This document shows positions 1-54,300 of a stretch of 64,000 bases of DNA, in pieces. Every line of letters starts with the position of its first letter. The stretch's first letter is position 1. A program made the position numbers and the translations under genes. The DNA is taken from positions 124,001 to 188,000 of the forward strand of contig NW_018408917.1 of the NCBI RefSeq assembly GCF_002113885.1, given 5' to 3'. The stretch is from Mizuhopecten yessoensis (Eukaryota). Under the pieces are notes generated by a model, which was not told where the DNA came from, did not search any database, and was given only the letters and a program-made list of their open reading frames with translations.

Positions 1-2269
1 GCACTGTATAGGTAGAATAATAAACTACATTAATTCATGGGCTATATCTCCTCTGCCTAACAGGAGCTGTTTAAATATGTGTCTATAACCGTAATCTTAA
101 ACAACGCTAGAAATGAATCATATTTTATGCCATTTTGTATGCAATATCCATTCCAATCAAACATCTTTTAATTTTAAATCGTGTTTAATTTCTGTGAAGA
201 GAATCAGACAATTGAACATAATGCCGACATGAAAAAATAATATGGCAAAATTGGTGCAACCGATGATACCGGAATGGACAAAATTAGCATATGGTGTAGT
301 AAATGTTAACTGTGTTTGGCTTTGGACAGAGTTATCAATTTCTTAATAGGTGCTTCCTTTTTATGTATTTGTAGCGATCATCTTTGAAACGCAATCGCTA
401 ACGACAAAGCGAAGATGAATTGTATTAAAGTGTTTTTTTTTTATCTTTGCAAATGATAATTTTGCGTTAATAACAAATATCTTGCAAATACGGAAATTAC
501 GTTAAAGCTTGTTATTGTCCATTTTGCAAAATATCTATGCAATCACTTTTATGCTTTGCGTTTAATCCTTCGAGACACAAAGTTGTTTTACTAAGTTGTT
601 TGATTCCTTCATCCAAGAGTTTTACACGCAACATTGACAACCTCAATTATATGATTTGATCATATGTCGTAAATGGTTCATAAAATAAACTGATTATCAT
701 TTTGAAATTAACAAGAAGAATTATTTAGAATACTAATCAATTATAATCGTTATACAAAGGATCAGTCATACGTGACAAAGGATAAGTCATAAGTGACAAA
801 GAAAAACTGAAGAAATGTATTTTGGTACTTAGTATAGATACATACTACTTAACCTATCAATTCTTTTTCAGCATGGAAAAGAATTGACCAATATATGATC
901 AAGGATGTTTGTTTTTCAATGTCATATATAGTGATATCATAAACATAACCTCTATACAATTACTCTTTTCCTTCGGAAAAGCAGCATTAGATAAGAAACT
1001 TTTTTTTTATTATTTGGACATTTCAGTCATTCGTTTTCAATTGGACAATGATGATAATATAACATTAAATGCTATATAAAAGTTAAACTGCCCGGCAAAT
1101 GAATTCAATATAATGGTTTGTTAAATGGTTGTTGTACGAATTAGTATTACATAGTTATTTATAGAATTGATATTTTTACAATCCCATTGAGAAGCCCTCA
1201 AAGAAATCTACTAAGCCAAATGTGTTGTTATGTACAAGTACCAGTAACACGTGGATGTTTTTGATATGGTACATTGTAACAGCAACGACTGGCTTACCCG
1301 TTGACAGTTAAAAATGTTACCGAGTGGAATAGTGTGCTTTGTATTGTATTTCAGTGACGTAAAGTCATATTCGCGCTATCGTAAGAAAGCAAATATATTA
1401 GCATACTTCGTCTGCATACATACACTCATTTACGCATGCATAGCACGTGGGTAGGGTATTTCTTTAATGAACTAAGCTGTTAATAGGTTTAAACTCTATA
1501 CAACCAACCAACCAACAAATCGGAAAAACTGTTCGGCATTTTCCGTTATGTTATGCTAATTGGATAGCAATGATGACATCACGTAAAATCCAAAACGAAT
1601 AAAAATTCCTGATTGTTTTTCATTTGACGTTTGTCGCCTTACGGACCTGATAGACAAAGAAAACCTTATCTTTCTCCCGCGAAAACGGTTGTTACATTAT
1701 TTGATAAAAACTGATTATAATATATCATTAAACAGCTCGGTTACTCTTAATTGACTTTCCTGTGATCTGTTGATAAATCTGTTTGACTTTGACATAACAG
1801 CACTCAGAATCACTTACTTTTACTGGAATCATGCATGTTTGTTTCACTTGTTCTGATATTTCTTGTGTATGTTTGATTATATACTCATAAATGGCTTTGC
1901 ACTACTGGTTACCTGTCTAGTTATTTTCAATCGAACAAAACATGTCCAAAACTGCACAAAATATGTATGAAGGTGTCTGAAAGAACAGACATAAGGACAT
2001 TTTAAATATTTATATAATTCTATTTCGGAATGATATACCTCAGTGGGTGTTGAAATAAGTTCAAAATGAACTTTTTCGTAATATGTTGGACTTCAATCGT
2101 GGTGATTCATCGGGTAAGATAAACTCACTTGTGAAGTTAAGATAAAAGAGTTTAAAACTATGAGACTTGCTTAACATCTATGTAGATATGGTAATTTTAT
2201 AACGTTTTACAAGCTGGATGGATGATTGACAACATTTCTGGGTACCTAAGTATTTTATTAACCAAATTC

Positions 2270-2812
2270 TTTGTTTGTTTGTTTGTTTGTTTGATTTTGT
2301 TTAACGTCCTATCAACAGCTAAGGTCATTTAAGGACGTCCTCCCCTGTGTGCAAGATGCATGCGTGCAGTGTATGTGTGTGTATCTTGGGAGGCTGCGAT
2401 ATGTTCGTGTTTGTCTCCTTGTGATAGCGCGGAACTGATGCCGACTTTATAGGGCTACCTCGCTGAAACGTACTGCCGAAGACACCCAGCAGGACGCCCC
2501 ACCCGGTCACATTATACTGACAACGGGCGAACCAGTCGTTCCACTCCTAATTTGCTGAGCGTTAAGCAGGAGTAGAAACTTCCATTTTTAAAGACTTTGG
2601 TATGTCTCGGCCAGGGGACAGAACCCAAAGCCTTCCTCACAAGGGCGAACGCTCAACAAATGGCCAAAAGTGAGGCATTGTCAAGGTAGACATTAGGAAG
2701 AAGAAAGTTATTTAGAAAGGAGAGAAGAGATAAGGTCCCAAATTTAGTCGCCTCTTACGATCATGCAATTGGGGGCAGCAGGTACAATTCTTACGCCCTA
2801 CCTGCAAGGACA
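2270..2812 (-). mobile_element. Full-length Meta-domain-type SINE with degenerate tRNA head and an extra ~150-nt 5' extension
   Basis: 11-bp TSD TAACCAAATTC (2259-2269, 2813-2823); (AAAC)n tail at ~2270-2295 after GATAGGACGTTAAAC; Meta-like core ATACCAAAGTCTTT...AACGCTCAGCA...GTCAGTATAATGTGACCGGG; decayed B box GGTTCTGTCCC near 2615-2625. Confidence 0.85.
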
Positions 2813-3331
2813 TAACCAAATTCAAAAGGCAAATCTACGCCATCGTCATCTATGAATAAAATTATACTATACACTTTACGAACTGCACGAAATGTTTCCT
2901 TGGTGAGCATAAACATTGGAAAAAGTACAAATGCACAAACAATTTGTATATTTTAATATCTAACTTTATGAACTCTTTTTTTACATGTCCCTTTCTTCTT
3001 TGACTGTACATGTATTTCGGAACATTTTATAAATGTATTTGTACTTTAAACCTATCTATGAGTCCTTCATAGATAAATGAGTTTCAATGTTAACCATGTT
3101 TGGTTATCTACAACGGTATCTGAGATTTTTAAATATTTACTTCCTAACTTTAAATTTGCAGATTATTTCAGTATCTACGCCACAACGTAGTTGACTCTTC
3201 AGGTAAACTTTCTGTCGTAGATGTTCTTGTTAAACTTATAGCAGAACTTTAACGTGTCAGGGTTTATAAAAAAACATTTTAAAAACATATTTCTGTTCGT
3301 TTTAAAATTTTGCAACTAATGAATAGTTGTA

Positions 3332-51381: not shown

Positions 51382-54300
51382 TCACTCCTTGGTGACACTG
51401 TCCGGTATTTCTGTCTTAATGACAATCTGCTCTGCTTCATCGCTAAGGTGATCATACAGAGGAAACTCACAGCAGCACAGACACTTCAAAGCCCTTGGGA
51501 GGGCTCCATAACAGCCCGTGGGGAGAGGGATAAGGGGACTTGTCCTGTTCTTGAATATCAAATAGCCTTCATCCCTGTAAAATGCATATATAACTAATAA
51601 ACCTTATGTGTAAAACATTTGTATCGAAAAAGTTTTTTCATCAACTGATAAATATTCATTACCATGCTTTTTGATAAGGATATGCAGCAAATGTGTATTA
51701 GATAAACATGTGTAACAACTGAAAAATGATTAAAATATCAGGACCATGTATTGAAATCTTACTAAGAACCTGAACAAGAAAACTTGAAAACTAAAGAAGA
51801 TAAACACAAACACATCTTTATTGAATGTTTGGTCTAATATCAATAAATCTTACTGTCTGAAACGTTCATCTGCCTTTTTCTCGAGAAGAGGGATACCACT
51901 GAGGAACAATAGGATTGCCATGGTGAAAAGTGGACTTAGGACGGCTGACCACTGTCCATCCCACAGGATACTGGTACTGATAATGAAGATCCCTAACCAC
52001 AATGTAATCTCTCCGAAATAGTTAGGATGTCGGCTAACACTCCATAGACCTGTCAATTCAAACGTAGAGTTATCTCCCTGAAATAGTTAGGATGTCAGCT
52101 AACAATCCATAGACCTGTCAATTCAAACATGTAGAGTTATCTCCCTGAAAATATCATATTCGTTTTTATGTAAGTTCAACTCTTAAAACATTTTTACTTA
52201 AATGTTTCTAAAACTAGGCACCTCAACCCTGGCATTCCTCCAAAAAAATGCTTAGGTCATTTTATGTACCTTAAATAAAATATACAAGTTATCTTTGTAT
52301 GTACGTTAATTTTGTTAGTGCATGGTGAAATAAATTCCTTTATAAGAAGAGCAAAACATAAAGTTTCTAGCACATCATAAAATATTAATTAAATCTGCAT
52401 TTTCAGAATTCTGATTGGCCAAGATACATGGATGGTCATGTGTGAGACACTGTTTCAGTATATTAACTTGATGTTACTTAACTTTTTTTAGAAACAACAG
52501 ATTGATAATGCTTTATGACGACTCTTTTATTGTGCTTTCTTGCCAAATGCAGTACTTTTCTCTTGACAATTTAATTTTTCCACTTTCTTTGATGATAACA
52601 ATCAGCATAATTTCATATTTGATAAAACAGTAAATTACTTAAGTTTCCACGATTAAGTATTATTTACCCCCAACTTTATCACGGTTAAAATATTTTTCTC
52701 ATGTCCATATAACAACAGAGTTCACCTCAACTTAAGTCCATAATTGTTAAATATACCAAATAAAATCCTAACATACTCACCAACATCACACCATTTTCCT
52801 TTATTAGCTGGATTATTTCTGAAGTTAAATTTCTCAATGTCACCAATTGTCTCTGATAGTAGACCAACAACGAAAAAAAATGCACCAACTATATCCTGAG
52901 GTGTCCAGTCATTATCAGGGTTCAACTTGACTGAACTGGACGGAGCATTTACAAAAATGACTGGCAAGCTGACAGTGAACACCCAAACTGCCTACAAAAA
53001 AAATAAAAAAATGATAGTTAATGCCTACGCAGGATGTTGTTACGAAACCAGTGTTAATACGAAGGGGTTGTTGGTTGGTTTTATGGAGTTTAATGACCTA
53101 TAAAGAGTAATGTAATTTTGGATGTGCCTCCATGGGTGTAATGTAGGCATGCATGTTTGTGCGCTGGTGGTCAGGTATGTGAGTGTGATAACCTCCTTAC
53201 GAAAGTGTGGATCTAATGCTGACTTTATAGTGCTACCTCACTGTAATACCATGCTGAAGGCACCCGGTACGGTTTTCAGCCCCCTCACAATGGGTGAAAC
53301 AATTATTGCCATTTTTCTAATTGCTTTTAACATGAATAACAATTGCCATTTTTAAAGACTTTGGTTTACCCGGGTATGGGGACAGAACCCATTGCCTTCC
53401 TCCCCTGGGCGAGTTTTCAACATTAAAGCCAAAAGTGAGGTAGTGTCAGGTATTATACACTAGGTAACCAAGGCAGTTTATAGATGTAAAGCGAAATACG
53501 AAGACTTTAAATATTGCAATGGGTGCAGCAGATATATTTTGATTGCTGTTCTGTATATCCCCAGACACAAATGCAAATCCCATTTTTCTGCAGGGGGTTG
53601 AATGCAGATGGGAGACATGCATTATGCCTTCTTTATGAGTTGATCATTTTATAATGGAATACAGTAGATTTTGCTTAATATCACTTCGCATTTGTCAGAG
53701 GAAAACATGATATTAACCGGAACGTGACATTATGAGGAAACATGTTATTCTGACCATACAGGTAAATGGGGTCGATCTATTTTTCGGCAGTCAGTTATGT
53801 GTGAAAAAGGCACCGTTAGGTCGTGACATTGTTTACATAGCGCATCCAGTTGTGACACAAGATCCCTGGGGCATAAATCATTGATTCTTATTATCATTTA
53901 CCTATGATTTGCTTTGTGGCAGTGGCCAAAATAAAGTGATACTAAGTGAAATTGACATAAAAACAAGTGATATTATTAAATAAAAGAATCGCATTCCATA
54001 GATTATATAGCAGGAAAAATGGTGCATGAAGAAAACATAACAATAACTGAAAAGTGATATTAAGCAACGTGATATTATGTGAAATGTACTGTAATTACAT
54101 TAAGTTTCCAGTTGCTTAACCAGTAGCATAATCAACTCTTATATTAGACTGAGGGGAAGGCTGCTTTCTGAGGTTTTTACCAAAGCTGGCTGGAACAGTG
54201 CTATTGATAGTCAAACAGCGTTCTTGTGAATTTGTTTCATGATATTTTGTTGGGTCTCGCAAGCTGACAGGAAAAGCAAATTTACTAGGGTTAATTAATT

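Follow-up and report, generated by a model that had tools for sequence, protein, structure and literature searches.

A MESC-Type LP-SINE in the Scallop Genome

The window analyzed here is a stretch of 64,000 nucleotides from the scallop Mizuhopecten yessoensis (contig NW_018408917.1, positions 124,001 to 188,000), and it contains on its minus strand a short interspersed nuclear element (SINE) whose 5'-most 78 nucleotides (nt), here called the head, are the subject of this study. From comparison with homologues we infer that this head, a module shared with long interspersed nuclear elements (LINEs), is a conserved RNA fold, new here and different from the fold first drawn for it from the letters of the window alone (the sequence-only reading). 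The element consists, from 5' to 3', of a LINE-derived head, a CT-rich spacer, a tRNA-like region, a body, and a (CAAA)n tail, with the following coordinates in the window:

2270-2812, minus strand: whole retroposon, a scallop MESC-type LP-SINE copy, 543 nt (flanking target-site duplication, copy identity, and the published Cfa/Mye_MESC description)
2813-2823, minus strand: 5' target-site duplication, GAATTTGGTTA, 11 bp (direct reading; identical to 2259-2269)
2259-2269, minus strand: 3' target-site duplication, GAATTTGGTTA, 11 bp (direct reading)
2735-2812, minus strand: LINE-derived 5' head (LP module), predicted structured RNA, 78 nt (match to a covariance model built from metagenome sequences only)
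2677-2734, minus strand: CT-rich (pyrimidine-rich) spacer (direct reading; the published description has an 88-bp CT-rich region after the head)
2606-2676, minus strand: tRNA-derived region (B-box-like GGTTCTGTCCC at 2615-2625 and a single T4 run at 2666-2669)

The 78-nt string lies at 2812-2735 of the minus strand just as the sequence-only reading had quoted it, and the insert that it had defined by target-site duplications (TSDs) does carry the 11-bp GAATTTGGTTA on both sides and end in (CAAA)n. The head, a non-tRNA module, occupies the very 5' end of the insert, and the tRNA-like part follows ~135 nt downstream. That reading was also right to see a structured module at this place, with the tRNA-like part internal, in a situation that resembles that of the 5' ribozymes of LINEs.

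Judged by its sequence, the insert is a member of the published LP-SINE / pectinoid MESC SINE family. Matetovici et al. (2016; PMC4758252) described pectinoid MESC-domain SINEs of ~520 bp, including one on a Mizuhopecten yessoensis contig. The 5'-most 68 bp of these SINEs match the first 68 bp of the 5' untranslated region (5' UTR) in the LINE Nimb-17_LMi, with I-3_DR and RTE-9_CPB matching as well; next come an 88-bp CT-rich region, a head derived from tRNA, the central MESC domain of ~95 bp, and a microsatellite as tail (PMC4758252). The window element is assigned to this family because its length, duplication, tail, CT-rich spacer, and tRNA-like part fit the Cfa/Mye_MESC description. The 11-bp TSD and the (CAAA)n tail correspond to the variable duplications and 3' microsatellite tail of SINEs, and the CT-rich stretch at 2734-2677 is followed, as described, by tRNA-like sequence with GGTTCTGTCCC. 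The start of a LINE 5' UTR in the first ~68-70 bp is found through a metagenome LINE (L199, see below). Both descriptions share a length of ~520-540 bp, variable TSDs, a (CAAA)n-type tail, a ~70-bp LINE-like start, a CT-rich stretch, a tRNA region, and a body, and the element itself shows no difference from the published one.

The name LP-SINE stands for "LINE promoter," and transcription by RNA polymerase II (Pol II) was suggested, with the L1Tc Pr77 promoter/ribozyme cited merely as an analogy (PMC4758252). The LP module can stand in for tRNA heads in SINEs, and LP heads also occur in insects and vertebrates (PMC4758252). In that paper the head is a presumed promoter, for which no RNA structure is given. 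Both the family and the idea that the head replaces RNA polymerase III (Pol III) initiation are already published and are not new here; the claim of the sequence-only reading that a 5' module took over from Pol III fits the architecture, but it was anticipated (PMC4758252). What is added to the LP-SINE description is the set of covarying helices and the corrected fold. A literature search on LP-SINE terms found Matetovici et al. 2016 alone, and the string of the conserved block described below had no match in a full-text literature search.

Copies were searched for in the window's own genome (988 Mb in 82,659 contigs), which holds ~2,560 first-look candidate copies of the element. Identity among 40 scored copies is 94-100%, mostly 97-98%. 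The 5' ends stack at one place, N-GTCCC, in ~34 copies, each with its own, differing duplication, which bears out the sharply ended, TSD-defined insert of the sequence-only reading, and the first base (N) is T, A, C, or G among them. Exact genome matches to ATCGTANNAGGCGACTAA number 2,565, against none for the reversed control, and the block is independently retained in three scallop variants with differing flanks (A, B1, and the AAAA type).

A Conserved RNA Fold Predicted for the LP Head

Homologues of the head were picked from metagenome contigs by a pattern of the block, which matched in more than 120 contigs among the matches listed; the invariance of the block in these homologues is therefore true by construction. 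Most of the matched contigs are AT-rich, repeat-like host DNA, and a few look like chance bacterial matches. The contig prefixes presumably belong to marine gutless-worm symbiont projects, and the label "worm-type" is used here for convenience only. An alignment of 27 worm-type heads (A2) was used to build a covariance model with three nested helices (R1), which found 102 modules in the first 100 metagenome contigs. A second search with R1 gave 69 matches, including the window head at 2735-2814 (minus strand), which was matched over the full model length with 30.3 bits and an E-value of 3.3e-4. Because R1 was built without scallop sequences and yet finds the window copy, the scallop head is homologous to the metagenome modules in both sequence and structure. 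The fold comprises the following parts:

2799-2805, minus strand: 5' strand of helix S2, GCAGGUA, pairing with 2778-2784 (covariation)
2778-2784, minus strand: 3' strand of helix S2, UACCUGC, pairing with 2799-2805 (covariation)
2807-2809, minus strand: tentative 5' strand of helix S1, CCU here and CCC in the family consensus (complementarity to 2796-2798)
2796-2798, minus strand: tentative 3' strand of helix S1, GGG (complementarity to the 5' CCC)
2785-2795, minus strand: loop L3, with conserved AAGAAU at 2787-2792
2769-2773, minus strand: 5' strand of helix c, CCCAA, pairing with 2737-2741 (covariation, alignment-free test)
2737-2741, minus strand: 3' strand of helix c, UUGGG (covariation)
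2744-2761, minus strand: 18-nt block AUCGUAAGAGGCGACUAA, inside helix c (genome and metagenome matches, three scallop variants)
2758-2760 and 2748-2750, minus strand: mini-hairpin UCG/CGA inside the block, 3 bp with a 7-nt loop (invariant)

Two helices carry the fold, as S2 and helix c covary across more than 150 homologues. S2 is the 7-bp helix that the sequence-only reading had drawn, whereas helix c (CCCAA/UUGGG) is new and closes a loop with the block AUCGUANNAGGCGACUAA. Pairs were counted in two alignments (A3 and A4), fitted to a model with S2, helix c, and the mini-hairpin, using the structure S1, S2, helix c, and mini-hairpin and 500 shuffles. In A3, 84.6% of cells are paired compared to 78.7 ± 0.5% in the shuffles, none of which reaches the observed value, with 91 double-change cells versus 35 ± 5 and a covariation score of 0.175 versus 0.101. 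The corresponding values in A4 are 81.7% versus 69.6% paired cells (again 0 of 500 shuffles), 158 versus 62 double-change cells, and scores of 0.256 versus 0.117. Pairing in A3 drops to 27-51% when the partner columns are slid by 1-3 positions. Double changes occur at all five modelled pairs of S2 (one pair, for example, is CG 38, UA 17, and UG 14 times), and the middle pair of helix c is UA 55, AU 25, and CG 5 times in A3, while A4 gives, for helix c, counts such as CG 16, AU 14, and UA 14. The frequent G-U pairs favor this strand being read as RNA.

Checks not fitted to the model point to the same helices. When 17 diverse heads were simply aligned with MAFFT, RNAalifold found both S2, with double changes at three of four pairs, and the mini-hairpin. 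In an alignment-free test that compared strands from the same sequence with strands from other sequences, the observed value was reached in 0 of 2000 permutations for helix c and in 9 of 2000 for S2. The top pair of S2 in scallop family B (see below), where G, U, or C stands uncompensated opposite a constant C, was not used as evidence, and the single-sequence fold is not more stable than its shuffles (z = -0.57).

A further pairing, S1, would turn the 5' part of the head into a pseudoknot of the H type, with the order S1 5' strand, 1 nt, S2 5' strand, 0-3 nt, S1 3' strand, an A-rich loop of 11-17 nt, and S2 3' strand. The two strands are complementary in all families, as CCC/GGG in family A (that of the window element), CCCC/GGGG in family B, and CCCCG/CGGGG in the worm type, and the pseudoknot, which is no more than probable, would be sterically ordinary and consistent everywhere. 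Within the A-rich loop, AGAAU is kept across scallop and metagenome families though it lies outside the search pattern.

The fold of the sequence-only reading had consisted of an outer helix GUCCU/GGGAC, the 7-bp helix, a loop pseudoknot GGGCG/UGCCC, and the mini-hairpin followed by CUAA, the last taken as the J4/2 of a hepatitis delta virus (HDV) ribozyme. It can be drawn on the single window sequence, and the 7-bp helix and the mini-hairpin are real, although the latter, being invariant, is uninformative about covariation. Two of its four helices fail: the outer helix and the pseudoknot are together paired in 41.8% (A3) and 41.7% (A4) of cells compared to 42.0% and 43.9% in the shuffles, with no covariation. 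Both are broken in the sister scallop family B, where the two outer pairs become A-A and C-A. The GGG of the outer helix (2741-2739) covaries instead with CCC at 2773-2771, which is helix c, and the GGGCG assigned to UGCCC more plausibly provides the 3' strand of S1, its GGG (2798-2796) being complementary to the 5' CCC. The pseudoknot as drawn would also have zero-length linkers on both sides of the 7-bp stem, which would be sterically implausible. The pair counts already refute this fold, which we regard as highly improbable.

Relatives of the Head and Their 5' Ends

The window contains one older relative of the element:

53068-53599, minus strand: older relative with ~67% identity (family B), 5'-truncated, starting at the second, degenerate head unit

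Family B has ~2,500 first-look candidates in the genome. Its consensus starts with CACCCCTGCAGG, position 1 being the start in 27 of 64 copies and the first 7 nt holding the start in ~40, and its insertions begin at CA-CCCC. The family B head consists of two tandem units, of which unit 1 is a full homologue of the window head, while unit 2 has an expanded loop without the block; the block is thus kept in the 5'-most unit only. Among the truncated copies (window 53599-53068, minus strand; L040; L081), 3-4 of ~24 start at the second unit (consensus 78-85) compared to a chance expectation of ~1, which may hint that an internal unit also defines a 5' end, the number being too small to interpret. 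A profile search of the scallop loci found further head variants, including L081. At L081:2055-2480, three tandem head units are followed by a CT-rich stretch and a short A-rich tail without a tRNA-like part, making this an LP-only SINE. The expanded loops of its units 2 and 3 are long hairpins whose sequences differ between elements while the pairing is kept, and S2 is broken in an internal unit. The block with AAAA (TATCGTAAAAGGCGACTAA) also occurs in tandem arrays at G000:C657:684149-684370 and G000:C5073:66941-67463, with periods of ~39-43 nt and ~84 nt (from positions only), which means that fragments of the head were amplified into small satellites.

In 37 worm-type insertions, drawn from several families, homology sets in sharply at the base (usually G) preceding a run of CCCC, and information rises from ~0.1 bit upstream to 2 bits from position 0. 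The start is accordingly written G-CCCC, and the G at -1 is found in 81% of these insertions. Six worm-type loci (L141, L098, L143, L115, L167, and L207) have an (AAGT)n microsatellite of ~40-60 nt inserted in the A-rich loop, and these families retain the flanking helices and the 5' end. The 5' end thus tracks the base of S1 whatever the loop length (G-CCCC in the worm type, CA-CCCC in family B, and N-GTCCC in family A), while the distance from the 5' end to AGAAU and the block varies between families (+21, +25, +27, ~+45, and more).

The link to LINEs comes from L199, where the module (cut by the contig end) is followed by a 1133-amino-acid open frame with Exo_endo_phos, RVT_1, and a PHD finger, the first in-frame ATG being at ~321. 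An autonomous LINE therefore starts with this head too, as reported for other species (PMC4758252). Many SINE families begin with the module, as does at least one endonuclease/reverse-transcriptase LINE.

Two other metagenome contigs carry arrangements of their own. L155:62-189 (minus strand; Ga0081606_1044330) has a tRNA-like start (GGGGTGCGCGGTAGTCTAGTGG...) directly after the head with no CT-rich spacer, and looks like a head-to-tRNA fusion different from the scallop one. L151 (NSIT01000753.1), presumably from a related bivalve, has two heads nearly identical to that of scallop family A (…GAATTGTACCTGCTGCCCCCATTGC…ATTTGGGATCTTATC).

The tRNA-Like Region and Pol III

The B-box-like GGTTCTGTCCC (2625-2615, minus strand) is identical in the older copy near 53,400 and in the family B consensus, and therefore represents a family-wide state and not the decay of a single copy. 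The sequence-only reading had noticed the same form in the copy near 53385, which is correct, and had concluded that the Pol III promoter has decayed, a point that sequence cannot decide, the B-box variant being the ancestral state of the family. Neither ARAGORN, in the window region 2200-2900, nor Rfam, on the tRNA-like region, calls a tRNA. The single T4 run at 2669-2666 lies ~145 nt from the 5' end of the element, and such a run at ~+145 speaks, on sequence, against Pol III transcription of the entire element from the 5' end. An internal tRNA-type promoter, in turn, cannot place a module at the 5' end.

The 78-nt head was also considered as a tRNA-derived Pol III head in itself, with A and B boxes at ~+8 and +52, and ARAGORN finds no cloverleaf in it; its covarying helices do not form one either. 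A reading of the 78 nt as tRNA-like or as an RNase P substrate was rejected, as 8 nt lie between the T-arm-like hairpin and the closing strand and the closing helix is not real.

Comparison with Known Ribozymes and Other RNAs

No described family was found over the module in Rfam. Permissive scans (E ≤ 10) covered the window region together with two scallop loci and eight metagenome contigs, without a match over the module, and the covariance models of the hammerhead, hatchet, pistol, twister-sister, hairpin, and VS ribozymes had no match over its scallop and metagenome versions. The Rfam HDV, CPEB3, and drz models likewise had no match at E ≤ 10, these being models known to miss divergent members. 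HDV folds with S1 as P1, with S2 as P1, or with helix c as P2 and the mini-hairpin as P4 all fail for want of P3/L3 or of room. Only 0-3 nt separate the 5' strand of S2 from the 3' strand of S1, where P3/L3 must sit, and if helix c is taken for P2, then P3, L3, the 3' strand of P1, and J1/4 would have to share only 8 nt, a shortage that also disposes of the analogy with the HDV P4-J4/2-P2 junction in the sequence-only reading. The twister fold and its T-variant were rejected as well: loops L4 (GUCCCAAGC), L2 (GUAAA), and L1 (GAGGG) and helices P2 and P4 are absent, and there is no Rfam twister match.

The site-specific element R2, which is co-transcribed with rRNA, has both a 5' HDV-like ribozyme for processing and a 5' pseudoknot for protein binding. 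R2 therefore offers another conserved 5' pseudoknot of a non-LTR (long terminal repeat) element, although its fold differs from that of the scallop head. HDV-like ribozymes free R2, RTE, and L1Tc, and twister variants free Perere-3 (PMC3185411, PMC3774820, PMC8501958). Similar in arrangement are L1Tc/NARTc, whose Pr77 and L1TcRz likewise form a ~77-nt module at the exact 5' end of autonomous and non-autonomous elements that are conserved over that stretch only (PMC3185411, PMC3383444). Pr77 is a precedent for a dual promoter/ribozyme, built as an HDV-like nested double pseudoknot (PMC3185411, PMC3383444), whereas the scallop head has nothing at the places of P3/L3 and P4 and no Rfam HDV match, and either activity is putative here. 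The T-variant twisters of Perere-3 (RTE clade, Schistosoma mansoni) also form a pseudoknotted LINE 5' end, with TSDs abutting the 5' edge, and serve as a release device (PMC8501958), but their signature loops and helices are absent from the head.

Two hairpins outside the head gave sub-threshold matches to microRNA (miRNA) families. A long inverted repeat at window 3365-3484 matches plant and animal miRNA precursors on both strands, with a best score of 33.8 bits compared to a cut-off of 53, and is probably a palindrome like that of a miniature inverted-repeat transposable element (MITE) and not an miRNA. At L134:974-1174, a ~200-nt hairpin beginning ~25 nt after the head scores 101.7 bits to MIR6457 (cut-off 140) and is most likely a long inverted repeat in the SINE body.

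Role of the LP Head

Taken jointly, LP-SINE identity, a structure at the RNA level, and a role in defining the 5' end make up the reading of the head that we consider quite probable; it includes no single biochemical activity. A structure under selection implies an RNA-level role, which is not predicted by a promoter alone. The module would be a portable unit that defines the 5' end and may thereby supply a non-coding retroposon with full-length RNA of a defined 5' end, independently of Pol III. The likeliest role of the ~80 bp would be that of an internal, presumably Pol II, promoter, as published, whose folded leader may serve RNA stability or recognition by the LINE protein; the main alternative is that the fold might free the RNA from read-through transcripts by cleavage. 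The facts fit an RNA that makes or fixes its own 5' end (by self-cleavage or an exonuclease block) and a promoter with a two-job leader about equally well. The tandem units are compatible with both, as they resemble LINE promoter monomers, yet the internal ones are incomplete in family B or have a broken S2 in L081.

Several points weigh against this joint reading. Promoter activity, cleavage, and protein binding are all putative. The counts in A3 and A4 are biased toward the helices of the model to which these alignments were fitted, and the unfitted checks are weaker than those counts. S1, and hence the pseudoknot, is tentative and drawn from complementarity: S1, which is not in the model, pairs in 73-85% of cells, with covariation no better than in shuffles or one-column slides. 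These statistics are flat because both strands are homopolymer-like; single cases look compensatory (CCUG/CAGG, CCAG/CUGG, and UCCCG/CGGGA), though within the shuffles statistically. In addition, the sample consists mostly of dead copies, counted as copies and not as independent master lineages, and the LINE comparison uses L199.

It is possible, though on balance doubtful, that the head is an undescribed self-cleaving ribozyme class that would cut at or just 5' of the S1 base and free the element from read-through or host transcripts. One such function would cover the fold, the ~25 conserved unpaired nt (AGAAU and the block), the exact 5' position in SINEs and a LINE, and the replacement of tRNA heads, and there are precedents (PMC3185411, PMC3774820, PMC8501958). 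The tracking of S1 by the 5' end despite the varying distances to AGAAU and the block suits a ribozyme and is a poor fit to a positional DNA promoter element. The restriction of the block to the 5'-most unit of family B and the broken S2 of the internal L081 unit also suit a ribozyme. However, the permissive scans found no Rfam ribozyme match at E ≤ 10, the HDV P3/L3 and P4 and the signature loops of twister are missing, scallop family A has 3 nt before S1, and new classes of self-cleaving RNA are seldom found in nature. A further possibility, rather unlikely as the whole account, is that the 5' RNA is a site bound by the LINE reverse transcriptase, comparable to the protein-binding motif of R2, or a block to a 5'-3' exonuclease that would thus fix and protect the terminus. 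Such an element would be in keeping with a stable pseudoknot, including its A-rich loop, right at the 5' terminus, with an invariant loop block of the kind typical of protein sites, and with a module common to LINEs and the SINEs that depend on them. By itself, though, it leaves the substitution of promoter heads in SINEs unexplained, there is no likeness to the known exonuclease-resistant RNAs in Rfam, and S1 rests on complementarity.

The internal "LINE promoter" proposed in 2016, acting purely at the DNA level with a fold that has no RNA function, is improbable, because compensatory changes and G-U pairs in two helices are not predicted by it. Its position at +1 to ~+80 speaks for it, I, jockey, and L1Tc (Pr77) have analogous internal promoters, the tandem units of family B and L081 recall promoter monomers of LINE 5' UTRs, and the G at -1 of the worm-type insertions could be a copied cap. 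Against this, the distance from the start site to the conserved blocks is variable over more than 20 nt, and over 40-60 nt where families have loop insertions, and there is no initiator (Inr) or downstream promoter element (DPE)-like element at a fixed offset. AGAAU and the block were themselves rejected as such a DPE-like element, given their variable distance from the 5' end.

The description of LP-SINEs in 2016 left open how a fragment from a LINE 5' end can take the place of a Pol III head in driving a SINE, and the covarying helices across distant hosts, together with 5' ends that track the base of the fold, move this question to the RNA level. We put forward tentatively, as a possibility more doubtful than firm, that the LP head belongs to a new RNA class that makes its own 5' end, by self-cleavage or otherwise, and consists of a small pseudoknot and a helix that closes an invariant 18-nt loop. 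If so, several LINE clades would have the LP head in common, and SINEs of molluscs, annelid-type hosts, insects, and vertebrates would have captured it time and again, which would explain the spread of LP-SINEs without a Pol III promoter. Should the RNA cleave itself, it would add a class of eukaryotic transposon-borne ribozymes; should it not, it would still be a widespread cis-acting RNA of non-LTR elements that is annotated merely as "LINE-like" in repeat libraries.

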